Positions 2,186 through 64,000 of a DNA stretch of 64,000 nucleotides are shown here, piece after piece. Origin of the DNA: Dicyema japonicum (taxonomy: Eukaryota > Animalia > Dicyemida). The stretch's first letter is position 1, and every line of letters starts with the position of its first letter. Position numbers and translations under genes: made by a program. The notes below the pieces were generated by a model. The model had not been told where the DNA came from. It did no database searches and saw only the letters and a list, made by a program, of their open reading frames with translations. Where the stretch lies: NCBI GenBank assembly GCA_011109175.1, contig RDEW01000038.1, forward strand, positions 367,155 through 431,154, given 5' to 3'.

Positions 2186-4329
2186 ATCCTCACAAAGAGA
2201 TTATTATATTTTAAAATTTAAATTTTTATAAAAAAATTATTATTTATGTAAATAAAATAGAAAATTTAAGTAATTTTTTGGTTGAGGTGGTTGCGTGCCT
2301 CTCTTCCACAAATGTCTTTTCACGTTAGATATCTACTAGTCGTTCTTTCTTGGCACCTTAAAAAATACTCAATCCTATGTATAGCTGACAACGGAATATT
2401 GCAGATTGGAAATCCCTGTCTGATTACCCTCTAAACAACCTGCTCTCACAGTGGACTTGATTTGCAATCTGACAATAGGGGAACTTGGAAGAGGATATGT
2501 AGAAGGATACTGAAGAACAAGTAAACAATTAATTTATGATTTTCCTGGAGTACTTATTAAAAATGTAGAAAGTAACATAACAAAAGTAAATGGGGAAATT
2601 AATCCGATCTTTAGTTGAGGAGTTAATAGCACTCCCAAATTTTCAATAAGCATATGAATTCTTAGGGTTTTCTCTCGTGCCGTGCTTTTTACTATCCTTC
2701 CTACCAGTTTCTTTCATAAAATGTTATATGCACCTATATTGCTTTCACAGGTCCCAGCCGTTTTTCGGTGGACGACGTAATAGATAAGTGATTCTCACCC
2801 ATATGAGGATGGGATGGGCATCTATGAAGATTTCAGATAGATATTCGTTATTCTTCATCTGACATCTGTCGAGGAGTGCAGCATTATTTACGAGTTCTGT
2901 CTTTTATCCGTTTTTATGCCATAAAGCCCTACTGAAACGATCTTGTCATAAGTATTCTTTAAGTGACTTTGCTTGGAATGTAGTCGATTTTGTTTAATAT
3001 TTTTATTTTCTCTTCGCTCCTGATGAGTTTTGATAAACCCCTCCGAGTTTTAGATACAGATTTCGCTACTACGTTTAATTCCCGCTTTGAAATTACTGTC
3101 CCCTAAATAGAATTATCAACCTCATTTATTCCTGTGGGGAGCATACAAGAGATTGTTTTTTACACGATTAGGCCGTAACACTTGATGGCCGATTCAAAAT
3201 TGATCGGTGCACTGCACGGCGTCTGATGGGAGTAGCATTATCCGACAATTGCCATATTATGCATCCCCATCCATTTCACCCCCTGCAGGCTAATGTTCAA
3301 AAGCTGTAATGGAAAACTGAGTAGACAGACAGAGAGTACGAAAAACTGTCATTACAGAGGTGTCAACCACAATGCCTTACATAAATTATTTAATAGTTAC
3401 TCCATAATTGCAGGTTCTCTCCCCCTTTTACTTCGTTTAATTCTTGTGACGTCATATGATCCGCCACGGCATCAAAAGGATCATCCTTCGTCATTTGAAT
3501 GGATTATTCCCATGAGTTCCAGCCCTGTGGTTGTGGACGAGGAAATCCTTGGAAGGCTGATATAATTTGCGTCACGTTATTTGATCCTAATCCTATCAGT
3601 TTACAGAACATGTGAGAATATATTGAATGGAAATTAAATAGTTTGATAATGTTGCAGCGAAATGGCGCTCAGAACAAAACTAGCTACTCAATAAAACTTC
3701 ACAGTCCCCCAAGACTCCCATTTCCCTCACTTCCTCCAACCATTCCGCCCAAACTGGAAATCCCAAAAACTAGCCCTCCGTCGATAATGAGCATCCTTCA
3801 CAGGAATTCACTCTCTAAGTCTGAAGCCCACAAGTAAGCATATTCTCTCACTCTAGAAAAAGTTCTGCGAAAGATGAGAATTTAGGTTCGTTTAACCTTA
3901 TTATTAGCCTCTAAATATAATACAAGTAACTCAGTTCCAACGAGGAATAATAACTTTGGTTTGTTTGGGGGGTAATATTAGGCGCCAAACCTGACCTTAA
4001 GCATAGGAGAGACTTGAGCCCATTCAGAGATGAGAACACGGGTTCGTTCTGTTTTAATTTGAGATCCCAAATATTTGACGACAAGTGGGAAAGACTCGAT
4101 TCCTTACCAAGATACTATTTCTAGTCTCTTTGGTTGTAATATTAGACTCGAAATATACATTTACCCCCATTTCTGGTATTCCACTTCCCCCAGAATTTAC
4201 TAATGCATTCGGTCGTTCCGTGAATAATTAATAATTATTGATTATAATATTTCCTATTATTTTTGTCCCCAAAATCATTTGGATAGGAGTCCTCAACTAA
4301 GTGGTCTCAGTTTCCCGGTTGAGTGAGAC

Positions 4330-28459: not shown

Positions 28460-28660
28460 AGTTAGGTTAGTTAAGTAACCCCCTCACTAACTTGTAGGAT
28501 GCCAGCAGCTATTAAATAGGACGCAGCATATGTTGGTCACTCCCATAGATCGGTCAGTCCCGGAATTGTAGACAAACGTTGTGCTAATTTATGACATTCA
28601 AATAGGCATTTTGTTGTCAACACGTAGAGGTTGAAAGGGACAGAGGATATCGTATGTTGA
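28460..28660 (-). mobile_element. Vingi-like LINE 3' end
   Basis: Alignable by eye with 58492-58690; (CTAA)n-type tail. Confidence 0.7.
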
Positions 28661-28723
28661 TAGATAGGGGTGGTGCCCACCTTTTCAACGATTAAGATTT
28701 TTAATAATAATAACACCAGAGAC

Positions 28724-43394: not shown

Positions 43395-44339
43395 ACGGTC
43401 CCCTTTCTCGTGTTTTTACTTTCGCTTTACTAACAATTCTTTTTGGGCGGTTTAATTTGAGTGAAATAATTCCCAAGTAATTATAGGTGTGGCCCACCAC
43501 AATTAGCTCTTTGCTAGCCATATTTAAGGGGTGGTGAGGAGATACTGAGGGAGGGGAGGAACGTTAATGAGTTATAATCTCCCCTTCTGAATCAATCACT
43601 TCTCTTCACATGTCTAACTTATTTATTTAAATACCAAGAATCACAGTTAAATTAAGAAAAAACACATCACTCAGTGTTCCTCTCGAGATCTAACACACTT
43701 CATGTACTGGCAATCGTTCATGTGAAATGAACTGTGGACCCGTTTTCCTCACTAAGGTCTCTAAGGGATAGGGTCTACCATCCCAAGACCGGATACACTC
43801 ATTGATCTCTTAGGTTTGTCTATAAGGCCTCTTGAAGTAGTTTCTTTAATTAGTTTGATCGATCAAGTGTCTTCATGTGCTAGAGTTGGTCTTACATAAA
43901 AGTTGATTCTTGAACAAAATCGCGTGCTTTATGTTTAAATCTCCGCATGATAGAAATTTTGGAGTTCTATCAGGGAAAACTTGTAGTATTTAGCCAAGAG
44001 CAGGAAAAAGCATGTAAATGTTCATAATTGCCACTACTTAGAGTGGGAGTCAGTATGTTGTCATATTTGGTCTTCATGCTGTATGGCAGAGGTCCTCAAC
44101 CGGTGGGTCACAGATAGATGTCGGTCCGTAGACCAATTGATGTTGGGAAAGAAATATAGTTTAAAATATAGTTCGTATGTATATGCACAGTTTTTAAAGT
44201 TTTATTATTTCAGTTTATCATAGTCATTCGTTGGTCGTAAGCTAAGTTTAGTGTGTTTGTGTGTCTTGTGATTGTTGGCACGAAATAGCATCATATTCTT
44301 TTTTATATTTAGCAATTTCAATTTAAATTTTTCATCAAA

Positions 44340-45968
44340 AGACCCTCCCCAGAGAGAAAAGTCGTAGTCTACATAAAACCAGACACTCTGATAAAATATT
44401 ACACATCTATATCCTACAGGAAGTTTTCAAAAGAACACCAAGTATTCCTGAAAAAGATTGAACCGAAACGCTCCGATGACTGGATCCTATTTATTAGTCA
44501 GATGTTCGCAGAGCCATATCTAAGGCCAACAACTCAGAGGCCAAAGGACCAGACAACATAACCACATGTGAACTGAAGCACCTAGGCCATCGAGCTCTGG
44601 AACTATTAGCCTATATCATCAACCTATCCATTAACACAAATACAATCCCTGAAATATGGAAGAAGTCTCTAATCAGACCTATCCGAAAACCCAACAAACC
44701 AATAGATGAACCATCTTCCTATCGCCCAATATCCATTCTAAGTCCGGTCTCAAGAATCCTTGAAAGGCTTGTTTTGGAAAAAATACAAGACTCAATCCCA
44801 ATACCTCCGACCCAGCACGGATTCCGGGACAACCATTCGACAACAACACACCTTACAACCCTCACACAATTCATTGCGGAAGGATTTAACTTTCCCAAAC
44901 CACATCAGAAGACAGTACTTATATCCGTGGACATCACAAAAGCGTTTGACTCAGTCCCAGGAAACTCCTAACAAAAAAAATATACGAAACCAACATCCAT
45001 CTGAACCTGAAACTTTGGCTTGGAAACTTCTTAAATGGAAGACGAGCACAAGTACTCTGCAACAACATCAAATCAAGATCTCGCTATTTCCCAAATGGAG
45101 TCCCTCAAGGCTCCCACTATCACCCCAACTCTTCAATCTCTACATAAACGACATGCCACAAACCTGTAATGAAAACTGTCTAACCCTCTCCTATGCCGAC
45201 GATATCATTCTTGCTCCAAGAACAGAAGCATTCAATCAGCGACTCAGTTGGCTCAACAAATGCTCGACAACTTGGAACTATGGCTCTCGAAGCGGAGACT
45301 TGACACATCAGCAGCAAAGTCCTTTGTCACACTGTTTACCACCTACAAGAGACAGCTCTGTATCGAACCAAAAGTCTTTATGAAGAACGAAGCTATCTCT
45401 ATTAACAAAACACGAAGATTCTGGGAGTAACCTTTGATCAGGGACTCACCTTTATCCGGCATGTTGAAAACAGAGTAACTTCTGCTGTGAAAAAATGAGA
45501 ATTTTAAAAGTGCTCTCAAAAACACTTAGAGATCAAACTGGGATCCTTGCCACGATTTACAAACAATTTATCCGACCAACGATGACGTATGCAAGTCCTT
45601 CATGGGCAATACAAATGTCACGATCTTCCACATTGAAATTTTCTGCAATCGAGGAGACAGCAATAAGGTTAATTGGACCAGATCACAATATCCAACCTAT
45701 TGAAAACTTTTTAATTGAACTACAACGGAAACTATTAAAGGAGGCTGTTCTACCAAGCTGCCCTCTATTCCAAATACTATCGAATTATCTACAATCATAC
45801 AGAAATTTGAGCCGATGCCATGTCCAATGAGAAGAGCTGTTTAGGATTCTCGACCTCGCCGGACTCGTCCTCACCTTTGTCGGTCTGGGATCACTTAGTT
45901 AGATGATAACTTTTATTTCTTTCTCTTTGACCCAGTGATCCTGGGGGTAATAATAATAATAATAATAA
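44340..45968 (+). mobile_element. 5'-truncated Ingi/Vingi-like LINE with (AAT)7 tail
   Basis: YRPISIL, QHGFRDNHST, GFNFPKPHQKTV..DITKAFD, GVPQG and YADD; frameshifted; homologous to 57430-58240 and 49410-49555. Confidence 0.85.
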
Positions 45969-48855: not shown

Positions 48856-49729
48856 AATAGGTTCGCCATATTGTAAAACAATTTTTAAAAATAAATAAAA
48901 ATTAAATTAATCTTAATAAATAAAAATTTGTATTAAACAATCAACATGTCCCACTAGTCTTTAGCAAACTTGAACAGCTTGGTAAAATCTAAACCAAAGT
49001 GTCCTATTGCTCAAATGGGTCAGGAAATATGTCCAAAATTTGGAAATATCATACTACAGAGATGCTATAGAAGAGTTATATCGCCAAATTTGTCGAGTGA
49101 GGTTAATCCCTCCCATTGGTTGGAAACCCATGGAGAAGTTAGAGGTTTTAATTGCTATTCTTAGAAAGGAGGTTTTAATTGCTATTAACTAATGTCATTT
49201 CCACCAACAAATATAAGCAACATCACGGATATTGCTTATGGTGGACAGCGGGTTCTCTCACAACGTGCCGAAAGGACAGCGATTGGATCCACCATATGGA
49301 AGCAAACCCTATAAAACTAAAGAATAATCGTGAACAAATAATAGAGCTACTGGAATGAGAGGAAACCAATGATATGATGATGAAACAAGGGACATGTTTT
49401 GACAATACTATTATTATTACCCTCAGGATCACTGGGTCAAAGAAAAGAAATAAAAAGTTCTCATCTAACTAAGTGATCCAAGACCTACAAAGGAGAGGAC
49501 GAGTTCGGCAGGGTCGAGAATCTTGAACAGCTCTTCTCATTGGACATGGCTCAAAATTTCTGTATGATTGTAGATATTTCGATAGTGTGTGGAATAGAGG
49601 GCAGCTCGGTAAACTATTTTTTAAAATAATCAGTCAATTACAAATTTTTCTTATTTCTTAAATCTTTTTCAAATTGAAAAAATCTAATATTTTTGTAATG
49701 TCTCAAAAGATGTATTTTGAGCTACATTT

Positions 49730-56802: not shown

Positions 56803-57429
56803 ATAAACGAATACTGGAACAACTTGGACATTGACTACTTCAATTAAGCCCTGATTAAATAAATCAATGTTCGATTATCAAAGGCTTGTAAAGCTTAACA
56901 ATCCAAACAATCAATTATTTTCTTCATACTAAATGAAATAGTTTTTTATTTACCCCCCAATACCTGTGCTTGATTGCATAGTAATTCCGTTAGTTCATTT
57001 GGTGTGGAGCAGAAATCGAAGGCGAATCAGGACAAGAAAAAGAGTGGTTCGTCTTATGGTCTTCTAGAAGGCTAAATGGTTTTCTCGGTAGTAGCTACAG
57101 AATGAACGACAAACTATCCTTCGCAATCCAATAATTTTGTAGGTCAAAACGAGGTCACGGATGAAAGGACATTGTCCTAAGATGATTAATTACAGTCGTA
57201 TGTCCCGGTGGACAGTTCATTTTTGAACTAGTCGCCGTGGAAACGTCAGGAATCATAAGAAGGTGACGAGTCCTGCTAAAAAAATCGAATCGCTCATCGC
57301 GAAAAAGAAAAATGATAGGAAAGGGGCTGGCTCATTGAGCACAATAGATGGACGAGACTATCGAAGGCTCTCTGCAGGAACCCCCCAATGCAGAAAGTCT
57401 GGAAGTGGATCAAGAACATCAGAAGAACC

Positions 57430-58240
57430 TCCCCAGAACAAAAAGTGAAGTCTACATCTAACCCAGATAAAATATTATACGTCTATCTCCTACAAGGAGT
57501 TTTTAAAAGAACACCAAGTATTCTTGAAAATGATTGAAACGAAACGCTCCGATGACCGGATCCTCTTTACTAGCCATGATGTCCACAGAGCTATATCCAA
57601 GACCAACACCTCAGAGGCCAGAGGACCAGACAATATAACCACATGTGAACTGAAGCACCTAAGCCATCTAGCCCTATTAGCATATATTTTCAACCTATCA
57701 TTCTTGCCTCCAAGGACAGAGGCATTCAATCAGCGACTCAGTCCATTCAACAAATGCTTGATAAACTAAAACTATGGTTCTCGAAACGGAGGCTCGACAC
57801 ATCAGCAACAAAGTCCTCTGTTACGAACCAAAAATCCTTATGAAAAACGAGGCTGCTACTATCAACAAAACACGGAGGATTCTGGTGGTAACCTTTGATC
57901 AAAGACTCTTTTATCCTACATGCTAAAAACAGAGTATCTTCTGCTCTGAAGAAAATGAGAATTCTAAAAGTGATTTCAAAACACTTAGAGACCAAACTGA
58001 GAGCATTGCCACAATTTATGAACAATTTACCCGACCCACGATGACGTATGCAAGTCCATCGTGGGATATGCAGATTTCACGCTATACACTATCAAAGTAT
58101 CTAAATCATACAGAAAGTTTGAGCAGATGCCATACTCGATGAGAAGATCTGTACAAGATTCTTGACCCTACCGGACTTTTCTTTTCCTTGTTGGTCTGAG
58201 ATCACTTAGTTGAGAGCTATTACTTCTTTATCTTTAACCC
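57430..58240 (+). mobile_element. internally deleted copy of the 44340-45968 LINE
   Basis: Collinear with that copy but jumps from the RT start (~57700) to the post-YADD region; same 3' UTR. Confidence 0.75.
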
Positions 58241-61200
58241 AATAAAATAAAAAAAATAAATAAAATTATTTCCAAAGACCAAGGGTAACCAAACTAACTA
58301 ACTCCTTGATCGTGACTCGTTCCAGCATTGCCACCAGGTAACGACGTTGTCCCCGGGGAAGAATTTTTGGATCCTCTTGATGCCGGCCAGGCATTGGGCG
58401 CCTCCTCTGTAAGGTGGATCAAGTGACGCCATCGGAAAAAAAATAATTTTGACAAACTATCCACGTAGCACCACATGGCGCCACGAGAATTTAGTTAGTT
58501 AAGTAACCCCAGCCTCACTAACTTGTAGGAGGCCAGCAGCTATTAAGTAGTACGCAGCAGATGTTGGTCGCTCCCATAAATCAGTCAGTTCCGGCATTGT
58601 GGAGAAATGTTGCGCCAATTCATGACATTAAAATAGGTGATTTGTTGTCAGCACGTGGAAGTTGCAAAAGGGGCAGAGTACATCATATGCTGGTAGATAT
58701 GGGTGGTGCCCACATTGTAGACCAGCCAGGTTTACTCGTACGTCCCTTGAATGAGAGGATTCTGATTGATCTATTGGAGGAGAGGGTCGGTGTAGTATTT
58801 TATTATCTCCGAGTCTTCGGATGCTTCTCGTAGAAACAAAATCGTTTATCTGTTTCAGACGACTCCTGTCATTGGGGATGGAAGGAATGGATGATAACAT
58901 TCGAGAAAGGTCACTGGTTGTCATAATAATTTTCATTTTGTTTTGCGGCTTGCATAGGGAGTGGCAGGGATGTTCTAGACTGTAGGCTTGGGAGAGGAAC
59001 TGCAGGGCTCTCATTTCCAGATGGTCTCCAATTGGAAGGATCTTTGACTCCCAATGTAGATGATCGACAGGATCTGAGACATCCAGTAATTATCCTGAGC
59101 GCGATGTTTTGTACTTTTTGTAGCTTGTCAATAGAAGTAAGAGAAGCAGAGGTTGATCAGCAAGGGCTTGCATAGTTAATAGTTGTTCGAATGAATTGTT
59201 TATGATGGTTAGGGCTACTTTGTTTTGGCCAAAGGAATGGCCTGACACAGCTTTTTGTGATGTTTCGTAACGGTGAGTGGTTGTCCATTAATTGTTAAAA
59301 TTGGTTGAAAATTTAGTTGGCGTCGGTTGGACCTGAATACAGTGACGGTGGATTTCGATGGAGAGGGGGATAGGTGGTTTGCTCCAAGCCACTCTTCAAG
59401 AGTGTTCAAGTGGATCTGAACATCCTTCGTTGCTTCGTTAACGTCCATGTTTTAGAGGCTAACAATCATGTCATCCGATACAATAGAAGTGTCTTGGAAT
59501 TGATTGGAATGTCGATAGGTGTAAGTTGAATAAGGTGGGTTATAAACGGAGCCTTGAAGAACTCCACTTGGAAGAAGTCTGTAGTGATAGACATGACATA
59601 ATTTCAGATCGACCAATTCTTCCAGAGAGGAAATTTGTTAACCAATTCTGTAGACGTGGAGGAATTCCAGATACAAGAATTTTGTTACTTAGCACGCGCC
59701 TTGATGTTCGATCGAACGCCTTGGTAGGACGATCGATGCGAGGATAGTCCGTTTGGGAGGATTATAATTGTTAAAAACAGCAGCGATATATTGAGTTAGG
59801 TAAGAAAGATGTGTTAATGTTGAGTATTGTGGACGAAAGCCATGTTGAAAATCAGGAAAGGGAAGATACTTCGATATTAGTTTCAGTACAACACGTTCAA
59901 CAATTTTCGATACTACAGATGTAGTGAAATTGGTCTGAAAGATCCCGGATCCGAAGGATCATTCTTGGGCTTCAGGATTGGGATTATTTTGGATTTGTTC
60001 CATAGTGCAGGAATTCTGCAGGTGTTGATGAACACAAAAATTATGTCTGCTATTGCTTTGAGTCCTTGCGTTCCCAAATGCTTTAAGTGCAGATTCCATC
60101 AAGCCCTTTGGTACGAGAGTTTTTGGCGTTTTTGATGAGTTTTTCGACATCCGACGTACTGATTTCAATCGGTTTTCCTTGAGGAGTTTGAACGTTTTTC
60201 AATTTGCATGGACGAGAGCATTTGTTCATATCTATGTGACTCACTTTTGCGTAGTGGTCCATTATGACATTTGCCTGATGAGTGAAATCACGTGGTGTTT
60301 GATCCTTGTCAATACTGGTGGCGTGGATTGTCTCCATTCTATTTTGTTTAGACTGAATTCTACGTAAGGTGCCCCAAAAATCCTTTAGTTTTGTTCGGTG
60401 GTTAATTTTTGTGATGAAATTGTTCCAATGGTCCAATTTCATCTTGTTGATTAATTCTATCCAACCTTATAGTTGCCGTATAAATTCTTGATTTTTGAGT
60501 CGACGTCTTGTATGAATCTTTTCGATAATTTCCTTAGTAAATTGGGATTATAGTCTGCAATGAGTCCTTTGGAATGTATTTCTTGTCGGCACTGAGGATG
60601 ACCTCATTACAAAATTTAATTCCGGCTCAAGCGATTTGAAATTCTCAACGGAAAAGTCGGATAGAAATTTTTCTGTTTCTTCTCTGAATGAATCCCATTT
60701 TGCACGTTTGTAATTTGTTATAGTTTTCCAGTGCCTAACAATAGGCGAGAGTAGTTCGATTGACAGTGAATTGGATTATGGTCCGAGTGTAGGTCATATA
60801 CAATTCTCCAAGATATCGCCGAAGATAGTGATGAAGAACATAGTGTGAGGTCAAGTGATGTATTAGAGTCTCCAGGTCTGGAAACTGTTCCGAGTGTGTG
60901 ATTTCCTGTCATTGAAGATAACTAATTGTTCTAGTTGAGAGAGAACCTGAAACCCCTCTCATTACTCGTTTGGCCGATTGCAAGAGAGGATCTTTTGCAT
61001 TTAGATCTTCGCAGATTATCACATTTTCAATCTTTGCAATTCGGTTAGTTTTGGGGAGTAATGTTTCATACTGGGACTTGGTGGCGGGATGTGAATATTT
61101 ACAAATATATACCTTGTGTGGTTTATTTTCACCAAGACGGAAGTAAGTTCGATGTGATCGTCATCTTCAAACAGAGCTTGTGTCTGAGCGGAAATAACGG

Positions 61201-61438
61201 AGAATGGAATAGATTTTTGTATGAGAACACCGCCTCCTCTGTTTGAATTCGGTCGGTCACGGCGGACAATTGAGTAGTCTTTGTAGTGTGGAAGCGCTGA
61301 CTTTCTTGATAGTTTCGTTTCCTGTAGCATGGCAATATCAATTTTGTGGGAAGTTAGAAATGCAAAAAGTTCATTTGATTTGTGTGTGAGGCCGTTTATG
61401 TTGAATTGCATGATATTAAGGAATTTCCCGTTTTTATG

Positions 61439-61483
61439 GGGCCCGGGGTTCTGTTCGATGTCCCCAGCAAGGATTAGGAGTAG
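61439..61483 (-). other. 2A/StopGo ribosome-skipping peptide LLLILAGDIEQNPGP
   Basis: Exact D-[VI]-E-x-N-P-G-P motif with a Leu-rich upstream helix, in frame with and 9 codons before the APE start at 61411. Confidence 0.85.
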
Positions 61484-61586
61484 CCAATCCGATCTTGGGA
61501 GCGAAAGCTACGCGCCCGCTCAATAGCCGCCATCATCCAGTCCGACTTCCCAGAGGTCGCTGAAAAGGTTGACAGGTGAATAGTAG

Positions 61587-61658
61587 TGGTTCTTTTAGTT
61601 GCCAGTTTGATACCGGCATCCAATTTTCTCCACGTGAAGGTGAACCATATCGAAAATT
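61587..61658 (-). ncRNA. candidate HDV-like self-cleaving ribozyme at the LINE 5' end
   Basis: Hand-folded: P1 AATTTTC/GAAAATT, P2 TGGTT/AACCA, P3 CAC/GTG around L3 CTTCAC, J1/4 GG, P4 TGCCGGT/ACTGGCA and C-TAA in J4/2. Confidence 0.55.
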
Positions 61659-61919
61659 TATTTTCACCAAGAAGGAAGTAAGATTTTTAAACTATTTGGT
61701 GTTACCGTGGTCTTTTCCAATGATCACGGGGGTAATAATAATGATAATTTAATTAAATTATTAAACAACAAAATTTAAAAAATAGTAATATAAAAAATTA
61801 CAAGTTTATGTTTTGAACTGTCATCAAAAGAAAATAAGAAAAGCTGCACGTCGGATATTAAAGAACGAAACAATAACAAAAATAGAGAAAATCCAAGGCC
61901 TTAAAGACAATGCGAAGTT

Positions 61920-62740
61920 TTATAAGCATATGCGGACGACGTGGACTTTATTTTGAATAACAAAGAGAGTTAATTGCACTTTTGGAGAAAATGCCTGATA
62001 AAATGGCTGAGTGGTCATTAAAAGTAAACACAAACAAAACCAAAATCACGGAGCAAAAAAGAAGTGAGGAAAGGACCGGGGAGCACTGATATAGATCAAA
62101 ATAACTAGGATCCCTTCTCGGTGACACCGAAGATACAGTACGAAGGAAGACACTAACTAATGTCGCTTTCAACAAAATGAAGAAGACCTGGCTTGTGCAC
62201 AAAAGGCTTGACCCTAAAACTTGAATAAGACTATACAATGTTTTAGTGAGGCCAATCCTATTATATAATGCCGGTACATGGGCATGTACAAGGCAGGAAC
62301 TCGAAAAGTTGAATTCTTTTCACAGAAATCATCTCCGGGTACTCCTTTCTTCCAGAAGCTTTTTCAAAACGCCGTCCGAAATCTTATACAGAGAACAGGA
62401 ACTGAGCCAATATCATGTGAAAGTTACTAATTACAAAATGGAGGCTCTTTGGACACATACTACGCCACGATATGGGGACCCCTGCCAACATAGCAATGGA
62501 GGAGTATTTTGTCTTAGAAGCTTCTCGTTTCCGCGGCCGGCCGAGGACAACACTGCCGGTTATTCTAGATGAAGATCTCAGGAGGATTGGAAAGTGCCTT
62601 AAAGATGGGGATGATCTAGATATGCTACGGAACATGGCAACGGATCGAATAAGATGGGGGACGTTAATTAGATTGTTAACTTTTCGTGTTGCACATGGTT
62701 TGTCATGATCTTGGCATCGAGTACGTGCCTATAATAATAA
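61920..62740 (+). mobile_element. 5'-truncated RTE
   Basis: AYADDVDF, RPILLYNAGTW, RGRPRTTL and DDLDMLR motifs; TAA-type tail. Confidence 0.8.
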
Positions 62741-64000
62741 TAAGTTTATGTTTTTTAACGTGAGTAGTTATTTTTGGTTTTACCGTGGTCTTTTGAAATT
62801 TTCATTTCAACACAGAATTGTGAGATTATTTAAGGGGATTAGCACCTCGCCGGTACGGAAAACGCCAAACATCGCGTTGACGATTGATTACTTCACAGTG
62901 AGACTTCCTCAAGGTGACCAAGTCACCTGAACATCTCCTTGGCCAGAAGTCAATTTATACCTGGAAGCCGGCCGAGAAGAAACTTTTCCTTTTGTGGAGG
63001 ATTCCAAGACCATCCACAGAGGAAGGTTGATATTACACCGAGATCACTTACTGTTACTTTTCTTGAATGTGTGCCATACAAGAGCAATAAAGAACACTTG
63101 AATCATTTTAACGAATCTTCGAAAATTGTAGACTACATTTTTTTATTGTCAACGCCCCACGATACTCCGAATAATCCGAACATAATCGCCTTTGGCTTGC
63201 TACTGCAGTAGTAAACCTTGTTTCTTTAACTGATCTGCTTCAAAAGACGAAAAATGTTGGGTCTCCCCCATTAAAATAATAGGTAAATGAAAGAAATAAT
63301 TATTCAAAAACTGCAAATTTCTTTATTTTTAATGTCGTTTACTTTCCATTATAATTTTTCTTAAATTTTAATTTTCTCTTTGACGGACGGTTGTAATTTG
63401 TTAGTTTTTTCCAAGTTTTCCATTGGACTTCACTACAAAATCCAATTAACTGATCAAAGAACATGTTCTTTCTACTCATTGCAAAGTATATAAAAATGGG
63501 GTACTTTGTGTGACCTAGGGGTTTGTCCCCAGTCAGAAATTGAAAATGTCTTAGTATCCTAAAAAAAATAAACCCTCTCTTCATTCAACAACAATTTGCA
63601 TTAAAGATCACTCCGACATTATACACGTGACGATTGTGCTGACATTAAACAGGGATGAGAGAACAAATACTATGGAACGAGATCTTTATAAGAGAAGAGG
63701 CGAAAAATCTGCAACTTTATTCATAACCAACGAAAGGGACAGGACACGTGCAGTATTTGCAGTTGTGGGGGAGAACAAATGATTCTTTTTAATTCCATCC
63801 CGGCACTGAGGGTTGGTGGATTACATGACGTCACTCTAGTAGAATGAGAGAAGGTGAGAAACAGAAAAGTCTCTGAAATGACATGGGATGACATTGTTAC
63901 TACGGTTCACAAGGGTACTTGAGACAGTTCGAAGTTGTAGATACATCTACTCTAACATGCATGCACTGTGCTCGAAAGGCCATAAGAATGTGTCCCTTGA

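Follow-up and report, generated by a model that had tools for sequence, protein, structure and literature searches.

A predicted HDV-like ribozyme and an N-terminal 2A peptide at the head of an abundant single-ORF LINE in an animal genome

Does a LINE of an animal genome begin with both a self-cleaving ribozyme and a ribosome-skipping 2A peptide, as L1Tc and ingi do in trypanosomatids? The question is raised by the minus strand of the window (the whole 64,000-nucleotide stretch of DNA analyzed here), where the original prediction placed an HDV-like ribozyme and a 2A peptide ahead of an APE-type LINE. We conclude that the element is probably headed by a 5' HDV-like ribozyme, predicted from its fold, and by an N-terminal 2A, in an arrangement like that of L1Tc/ingi. 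Sequence comparison lends this reading three independent kinds of support: the family boundary falls at the predicted cut site, the best-supported family variants within the fold all lie in one helix (P4), and the module recurs in relatives with covarying helices.

How much of the element is present can be judged from its parts. It occupies 61658-58494 of the minus strand (~3165 bp) and is complete in extent from the 5' boundary to the family 3' end, and the claim that the module heads a full-length LINE is borne out. The features, from 5' to 3' along the element, are as follows.

61659-61682, minus strand: extra letters at the 5' junction (blastn, E 3.8e-6)
61587-61658, minus strand: candidate HDV-like ribozyme, with predicted cleavage between 61659 and 61658
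61484-61586, minus strand: leader from the ribozyme to the 2A peptide (three-frame translations)
61494-61495, minus strand: site at which this copy is one base shorter (contig comparison)
61439-61483, minus strand: 2A/StopGo peptide LLLILAGDIEQNPGP (translation), with the predicted skip between Gly (61444-61442) and Pro (61441-61439)
60700-61411, minus strand: APE endonuclease domain (Pfam PF03372, E 3.6e-8; tblastn of relatives), with in-frame stops
59240-59970, minus strand: reverse transcriptase domain, split over three frames (tblastn with P0057, P0011, P0064, and P0088, whose RVT_1 maps here)
58538-59254, minus strand: C-terminal region with a Cys/His motif near 58690-58630 (translation and tblastn)
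58494-58520, minus strand: family 3' end, a short TAAC-type repeat (alignment with the copy at 28466-28683)

Relatives of 900-1200 aa align by tblastn from the 2A peptide (61483) to 58538, and the only domains found in them are PF03372, PF14529, and PF00078 (RVT_1). The element has no room for an RNase H domain, and Pfam found no match to one in the C-terminal pieces or in the full-length relatives. The reading frame is broken in many places, as it changes at least six times (near 60092, 59915, 59725-59500, 59260, 59204-59079, and 59068) and is interrupted by several stops. The copy is therefore old, and the module cannot operate from it. Judged on its sequence, the copy is a full-length but mutationally dead member of a very abundant single-ORF LINE that carries APE, reverse transcriptase, and a Cys/His tail.

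The 3' end was located with the help of 28466-28683, a 5'-truncated copy of the family 3' end that is 84% identical and in which homology stops at the TAAC-type repeat near 58494. No clean target-site duplication was found in 58440-58494 and 61683-61700, only an imperfect ATAGTTT..AAAAT about 35 nt past the supposed 3' end, so that the 3' end of this copy is placed only approximately. A different repeat family lies directly 3' of the LINE (57417-58241), with copies 76-83% identical at 44333-45934 and 49433-49588. Just upstream of the element is a separate insertion on the plus strand, the 3' part of a 5'-truncated LINE (61695-62794) with ORFs in 62246-62708 and an A/T-rich triplet tail, bounded by direct repeats of ~22 nt (61695-61716 and 62773-62794).

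Whether the element starts with an HDV-type ribozyme depends first on architecture. The first 72 nt, 61658-61587 of the minus strand, can be arranged as an HDV-type nested double pseudoknot, in which RNA position i equals 61659 minus the coordinate. Every detail of the fold that the original prediction had drawn by hand is present in the minus-strand sequence, as listed here.

61658-61652 and 61628-61622, minus strand: P1, 7 bp, AAUUUUC/GAAAAUU, RNA positions 1-7 and 31-37
61651-61648, minus strand: J1/2, 4 nt
61647-61642 and 61592-61587, minus strand: P2, 6 bp, UGGUUC/GAACCA, RNA positions 12-17 and 67-72
61641-61639 and 61631-61629, minus strand: P3, (A)CC/GG(A), 2+1
61638-61632, minus strand: L3, UUCACGU
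61621-61620, minus strand: P1.1, GG (G38 G39), with A40 next
61618-61600, minus strand: P4, 7 bp, RNA positions 41-47 and 53-59, with A60 next
61598, minus strand: candidate catalytic C (C61), which opens C-U-A-A in J4/2, 1 nt past P4
61598-61593, minus strand: J4/2, CUAAAA, which runs into P2

In this fold, P1 encloses P3, P2 crosses P1, and P4 sits between P1.1 and J4/2. The L3 loop of HDV-like ribozymes has a conserved G and U (PMC3774820), and here the U is at position 1 and the G at position 6 of the loop, five positions apart. P1.1 is able to form, as G38 and G39 can pair with C23 and U22 of L3, and J4/2 contains C-N-R-A. The pseudoknot-free minimum free energy fold recovers P2 and P4 at -20.6 kcal/mol (z = -3.2), and all 6 bp of P2 were recovered both by that fold and by the descriptor scanner. 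P1 consists of six A-U pairs and one G-C pair.

The original prediction took this copy to be possibly decayed, and its ORF is indeed broken. The two signs of decay that the prediction named are minor. One was a J4/2 longer than canonical, which is not really aberrant, as the relatives have C-N-A-A plus 1-3 nt at that place. The other was an A instead of a G at +1. The letter was read correctly, and most relatives do have G there (one has C), but as a sign of decay it is minor, since the A pairs with U37.

Is the fold more than chance would give? An A/T-rich 5' UTR might satisfy a permissive pseudoknot descriptor, and our first descriptor was permissive: it required a P1 with 6 bp or more, a P2 with 5 or more, a P3 containing two Watson-Crick pairs, a P1.1 that pairs with L3, a P4 with 4 or more, and C-N-R-A preceding P2. 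The descriptor matched 11 times in the window, at the candidate and at ten other places, against 12.9 times per dinucleotide-shuffled window, and a loose match at any given position is expected at ~1e-4 per nt. The first descriptor also missed real-looking folds in three of the relative loci described below (L003, L007, and L001). Since shuffles matched it as often as the window did, it was used only in combination with position.

The Rfam models gave a mixed answer. In an E-value scan, RF02682 (HDV-F-prausnitzii) aligned over its full model to exactly 61658-61587 with 15.6 bits and E 2.6, placing P1, P3, and P4 at the candidate coordinates. Thus, the Infernal-type HDV search that had been proposed as a check found the position over the full model, but at a score below the gathering level (44 bits), and no Rfam model had a match at gathering level anywhere in the window. 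The Rfam HDV-type models contain no pseudoknot partner P2 and have narrow seed sets. We conclude that the fold alone is moderately unusual and no more, and that it exceeds chance because it is placed at the family 5' terminus and recurs in relatives. Chance resemblance has on its side the roughly 13 loose matches in every shuffled 64-kb window and the Rfam E-value of 2.6, and we nonetheless regard it as very improbable. A shuffled window yields on average 0.05 matches of candidate quality (GG with 20 or more helix pairs), the candidate sits at the first nucleotide of the family, and the architecture recurs at a like distance from 2A in unrelated contigs (p < 0.002) with compensatory changes.

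The 5' boundary of the family was read from contigs of three runs of one organism, compared over 61200-61800. The family is very high-copy, with a summed contig depth of ~80,000-140,000 over 61494-61661. At the boundary, the summed depth is ~79,000 in the bin 61641-61661, falls to 568 in 61662-81, and is 0 further out. Each run has 8-10 contigs that depart from the window sequence at precisely 61658, entering flanks that do not resemble one another (agreement 0.44-0.46), and 3-4 contigs that depart at 61659. As contigs leave at 61658, the family and P1 begin at the same nucleotide, the place where HDV-type ribozymes cut. No second copy of the 5' end is present within the window.

The junction of this particular copy bears on the same nucleotide. 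The stretch 61657-61682, made up of the junction letters and the first 2 nt of the element, duplicates the APE stretch 61147-61122 of the same element on the minus strand, with 25 of 26 letters identical. We infer a template jump by reverse transcriptase at the RNA 5' end, and as the 26-nt copy abuts +1, it fits a jump from an RNA that would have ended at, or within 2 nt of, 61658. Putative template jumps have been mentioned for R2 5' junctions (PMC3774820).

A sharp 5' end of this kind, read as it is from contigs, could arise from a fixed transcription start too. Accordingly, the fold might be real but non-cleaving, either as a promoter or transcription-start element in DNA or as a 5' protective or IRES-like structure in RNA, with 61658 as the transcription start. 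A precise 5' end is what any LINE with an internal promoter would be expected to have, and the 77 nt of the L1Tc ribozyme also act as its promoter (PMC5814959, PMC3383444). A transcription start, however, would not explain why the family's first nucleotide is precisely where the helix required at the cut site begins. Moreover, the features that are conserved are those of the HDV active site, namely, how U and G are spaced in L3, the dinucleotide following P1 that pairs with L3, and a C-N-A-A that joins P4 to P2. We consider a non-cleaving fold unlikely, and note that non-cleaving roles and cleavage are not mutually exclusive.

Variation within the family is a second line of evidence for the ribozyme reading. 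Among the best 40 of 109 differences, five lie inside the fold, and all five are in P4 (RNA positions 42, 45, 48, 50, and 53), which is the dispensable helix of the fold. One of them, G45 to A45, turns a G-U pair into an A-U pair. Among the same best 40 of 109, no variant falls in P1, P2, P3, L3, P1.1, or J4/2, the other 53 nt. Variation confined in this way was counted for the ribozyme.

Whether the ribozyme of this copy could still cut is a separate matter. The module may be genuine in the family while the ribozyme at this locus, with its A-A in P3 and its weak P1, is inactive as well, so that the whole locus is a fossil. We give this a chance somewhat short of even. The copy is old by its at least six frame changes and several stops, and the outer pair of P3, an A-A mismatch here, is paired in relatives (A-U, G-U, or G-C). 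Against a fossil, P1, P3, and L3 show no well-supported variant among the best 40 of 109, so the copy seems to carry the usual letters, and an active R2 ribozyme with both a 4-bp P1 and a P3 mismatch is on record (PMC3774820).

The contigs also contain a hint of shorter elements. Summed depth over 61494-61661, the ribozyme and leader, is about twice that over 61410-61493, the 2A and the start of APE, and 7-9 contigs per run depart from the window sequence at 61495/6. The excess and the departures together suggest non-autonomous derivatives with the first ~165 nt only. Such putative derivatives would be likened to NARTc and RIME, the derivatives of L1Tc and ingi that share the 5' module.

The third line of evidence for a ribozyme comes from related LINEs. 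The loci compared were the octopus locus, the loci of the phmmer matches P0004, P0005, and P0012, and 25 metagenome loci (small N-terminus alignment). In one phmmer match, P0028 (Octopus sinensis, contig VCDQ01001009), the first residues of the protein are the translated ribozyme core. A covariance model built from the 72 nt of the window alone, with P1, P3, and P4 paired, found L001 of Octopus sinensis at 2996-3061 (E 0.0027) and the metagenome locus L012 at 446-517 (E 0.055). A second model, built from the window, L001, and L012, added L002, L010, and L005 (E 0.07-0.38) and L007 (E 3.9). When up to 450 nt ahead of each 2A were scanned with a relaxed descriptor, L012, L005, L007, L002, L003, and the window matched. 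For five of the 19 loci (L012, L005, L007, L002, and the window), the match ends 91, 118, 121, 125, or 146 nt before 2A; in 500 shuffles, the mean number of such loci was 0.44 and the highest was 3, the interval of 80-160 nt having been chosen after seeing the data.

The relatives keep the pairing and change the letters. The fold of L012 consists of P1 GCAGCAC/GUGCUGC, P2 UGUCCCC/GGGGACG, P3 ACC/GGU, GG, an 8-bp P4, and CGAA, with an L3 identical to that of the window; in Rfam, it reaches 26.6 bits with HDV_ribozyme and 22.6 bits with RF02682, both full-length. L007 has P1 CCUCGUC/GACGGGG and a P1.1 of A-G that pairs with C-U of L3, and L005 has a P1.1 of A-C that pairs with G-U of L3. The catalytic C stands in a C-N-A-A context in L001, L002, L003, L005, L007, and L012 as well. 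P1, P2, and P4 differ in letters among relatives with pairing kept; for P2, this is seen in L012, L005, L007, and L003. In the alignment of the window, L001, and L012, 95.9% of cells are paired, against 30-52% with the partner columns slid, and both sides have changed in 11 of 17 pairs; none of 500 shuffles reaches any of these measures. The alignment was fitted to structure, so the pair count leans towards structure. The pair-counting tool left P2 out, and P2 was not counted because the model-made alignment (A8) contained a false match and a misaligned P2. Compensatory helix changes among these three homologues are what would be expected of a ribozyme.

Not every relative could be used. Rfam E-value scans gave no HDV match in L001-L004 or L032-L035, and no ribozyme was found in L004, in L030 (5'-truncated), or in L031 (of the G-D-I-H-P-N-P-G-P type). 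L032-L035, contigs of element length that are related to the window's best full-length relative, have a P1-P3-L3 core 200-260 nt before 2A with an ambiguous P2 (4 bp) and P4, and they were not taken as positives; nor was L010, which looks P4-less at 91-150. L010 and the first 260 nt of L032-L035 may hold divergent or minimal HDV-like variants. A MAFFT alignment of six candidate ribozymes was structurally inconsistent and was dropped. The closest relative of the ribozyme is L001, whose P2 letters match those of the window and whose J4/2 letters nearly do, while the proteins are only ~36% identical. The likeness raises the question of a host-parasite link.

The 2A peptide is the second half of the module. 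LLLILAGDIEQNPGP lies ~125 nt downstream of the ribozyme, in frame with the APE domain (PF03372), which starts ten codons later, and a 2A directly before APE was indeed what had been predicted. It has D-[VI]-E-x-N-P-G-P after a hydrophobic, helix-prone tract, and a six-frame translation of the whole window contains the pattern D[VI]ExNPGP a single time, while none of 300 shuffles contains it. A phmmer search with the 2A and the APE N terminus as the query found a 2A motif near the N terminus in 46 of the 152 best cluster representatives, and one protein (P0001) has a near-identical 2A. Among P0003-P0152 are many LINE N termini with an L-rich tract followed by G-x-H-P-N-P-G-P, where His replaces the usual Glu-x. 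By their sequences, these proteins form a large group of 2A-like variants.

Upstream of the 2A, this copy is one base off. One leader frame is open from the first ribozyme codon (61656) to 61477 and has AUG AUG at 61537-61532, and translation confirmed the predicted short leader MMAAIERARSF.. one frameshift away, in the frame neighboring that of 2A. An extra letter behind 61494 is found in 22, 11, and 13 contigs of the three runs, or 25-39% of summed depth, and the one-base-shorter state of this copy has the larger share. With the extra base at 61494/5, the AUG-AUG leader and the 2A share one frame.

The frame before the 2A is open in relatives too. All seven relatives lack stops in the 2A frame from ribozyme to 2A, over 155-351 nt, while nine of their 14 remaining frames contain stops. 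In-frame AUGs occur in L001 just before the ribozyme and inside its J1/2. The first in-frame AUG of L007 and L012 comes only four codons ahead of the 2A motif, and L010 lacks one altogether. The annotated octopus protein starts at the AUG inside the ribozyme. Ruminski et al., in 2011, reportedly found that the ORF is often open through such ribozymes and that the fold promotes translation initiation. A frame open through the fold, with several relatives lacking an AUG, points to a role in translation, and this is the remaining point in favor of a non-cleaving structure.

How would a ribozyme and a 2A work together in live copies? The transcript, whether from the element's own promoter or from read-through of host DNA, would fold during synthesis and cut itself 5' of A61658, which would remove upstream sequence. 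The RNA would then start at +1 with a 5'-OH, its uncapped end buried in a compact fold. Translation would proceed without a cap, and the leader would be read first. At NPG/P the ribosome would skip and free a short leader peptide (32 residues if started at AUG-AUG), then continue with Pro-His-Lys.. into an APE-RT product that starts with proline. Reverse transcription that runs all the way to the RNA end would regenerate the ribozyme in every full-length copy. Cleavage, skipping, and cap-independent initiation are what we infer from L1Tc (PMC5814959, PMC3185411), R2 (PMC3774820), and the 2As of animal LINEs (PMC3708506).

The two devices may do more than sit side by side. The open frame across the ribozyme and the spacing suggest that they are functionally coupled through uncapped RNA, unconventional initiation, and clean-up of the N terminus by 2A. 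We speculate, tentatively and with more doubt than confidence, that ribozyme, leader, and 2A form one cap-independent cassette common to many animal LINEs. Translation would often start without an AUG, within or just after the fold, and the 2A would discard the resulting heterogeneous N-terminal peptide. The 2A would be kept ~90-150 nt downstream so that APE-RT always begins with the same proline. Disposal of a ribozyme-encoded peptide would explain why N-terminal 2As are frequent in single-ORF LINEs.

How the family compares with known LINEs depends on which part is considered. As a whole, the element resembles Vingi, which is ~3.1-3.2 kb, has a single ORF of ~1000 aa, lacks RNase H (examples are Vingi-2_Gav, 3128 bp, and Vingi-1_ACar), and has ~75 nt at its 5' terminus that SINEs reuse, which we count as a further likeness (PMC5786205, PMC13708176). 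Vingi is compatible with the 3165 bp, the single APE and RT ORF, and the absence of RNase H, but these features are common to other clades, and so do not decide on Vingi membership. Neither a ribozyme nor a 2A is listed for Vingi in the literature compared. Compact single-ORF LINEs such as Vingi and RTE are used as gene-insertion tools with their native 5' UTRs (PMC13708176), and a 5' module of this sort would bear on such use.

In its predicted ribozyme, the element is like R2, R4, RTE, and LOA/Baggins, in which a 5'-terminal double pseudoknot frees the element RNA from longer transcripts, with a P1 of 6-7 bp, a P2 of 5 bp or more, and a variable P4 (PMC3774820; clade list in PMC5786205). One more LINE lineage would thereby join the list of ribozyme bearers (PMC5786205). 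The R2 ribozyme cuts upstream in 28S sequence, whereas P1 here consists wholly of element sequence, and no 2A after ribozymes of the R2/R4/RTE/LOA/Baggins type is described in the literature compared.

In its 2A, the element is like other animal APE LINEs. Odon et al. (2013) described 2A-like sequences at the N terminus of Rex1, Crack, L2, L2A, CR1, and Ingi-1_AC, with activity for several families (PMC3708506). As in those elements, the 2A lies immediately upstream of APE in a single-ORF element, with an L-rich hydrophobic tract before G-D-I-E-x-N-P-G-P. The same study found no 2A in Vingi elements and made no mention of ribozymes, the upstream RNA being outside its scope (PMC3708506). What differs here is that the 2A lies at a nearly fixed distance past a predicted ribozyme, and that the stretch between them is open in frame.

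Ribozymes at LINE 5' ends and N-terminal 2As are thus known separately in animals, and together only in trypanosomatid L1Tc/ingi; a full-text literature search found no description of the pair in animal LINEs. L1Tc has an HDV-like ribozyme (L1TcRz) in its first 77 nt, at +1, combined with an N-terminal 2A (L1Tc2A) (PMC5814959). The window element has the corresponding parts, a predicted ribozyme that would occupy the first ~75 nt and cut at +1 and a D-x-E-x-NPGP 2A that precedes a single APE-RT ORF in the same frame, without ORF1. Non-autonomous derivatives of L1Tc/ingi share the 5' module (PMC5814959, PMC4035085), and depth and loose contig ends hint at the same here. L1Tc/ingi differ in their kinetoplastid hosts, in their RNase H domain, and in helix letters that are unrelated to ours. 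Without RNase H, the window element is not an Ingi element, despite its L1Tc-like 5' end. Instead, we read the window family, from its sequence, as a putative new animal member of the L1Tc/ingi-type arrangement, with the pair now found in a very abundant LINE of an animal genome and, at near-fixed spacing, in octopus and marine-metagenome relatives.
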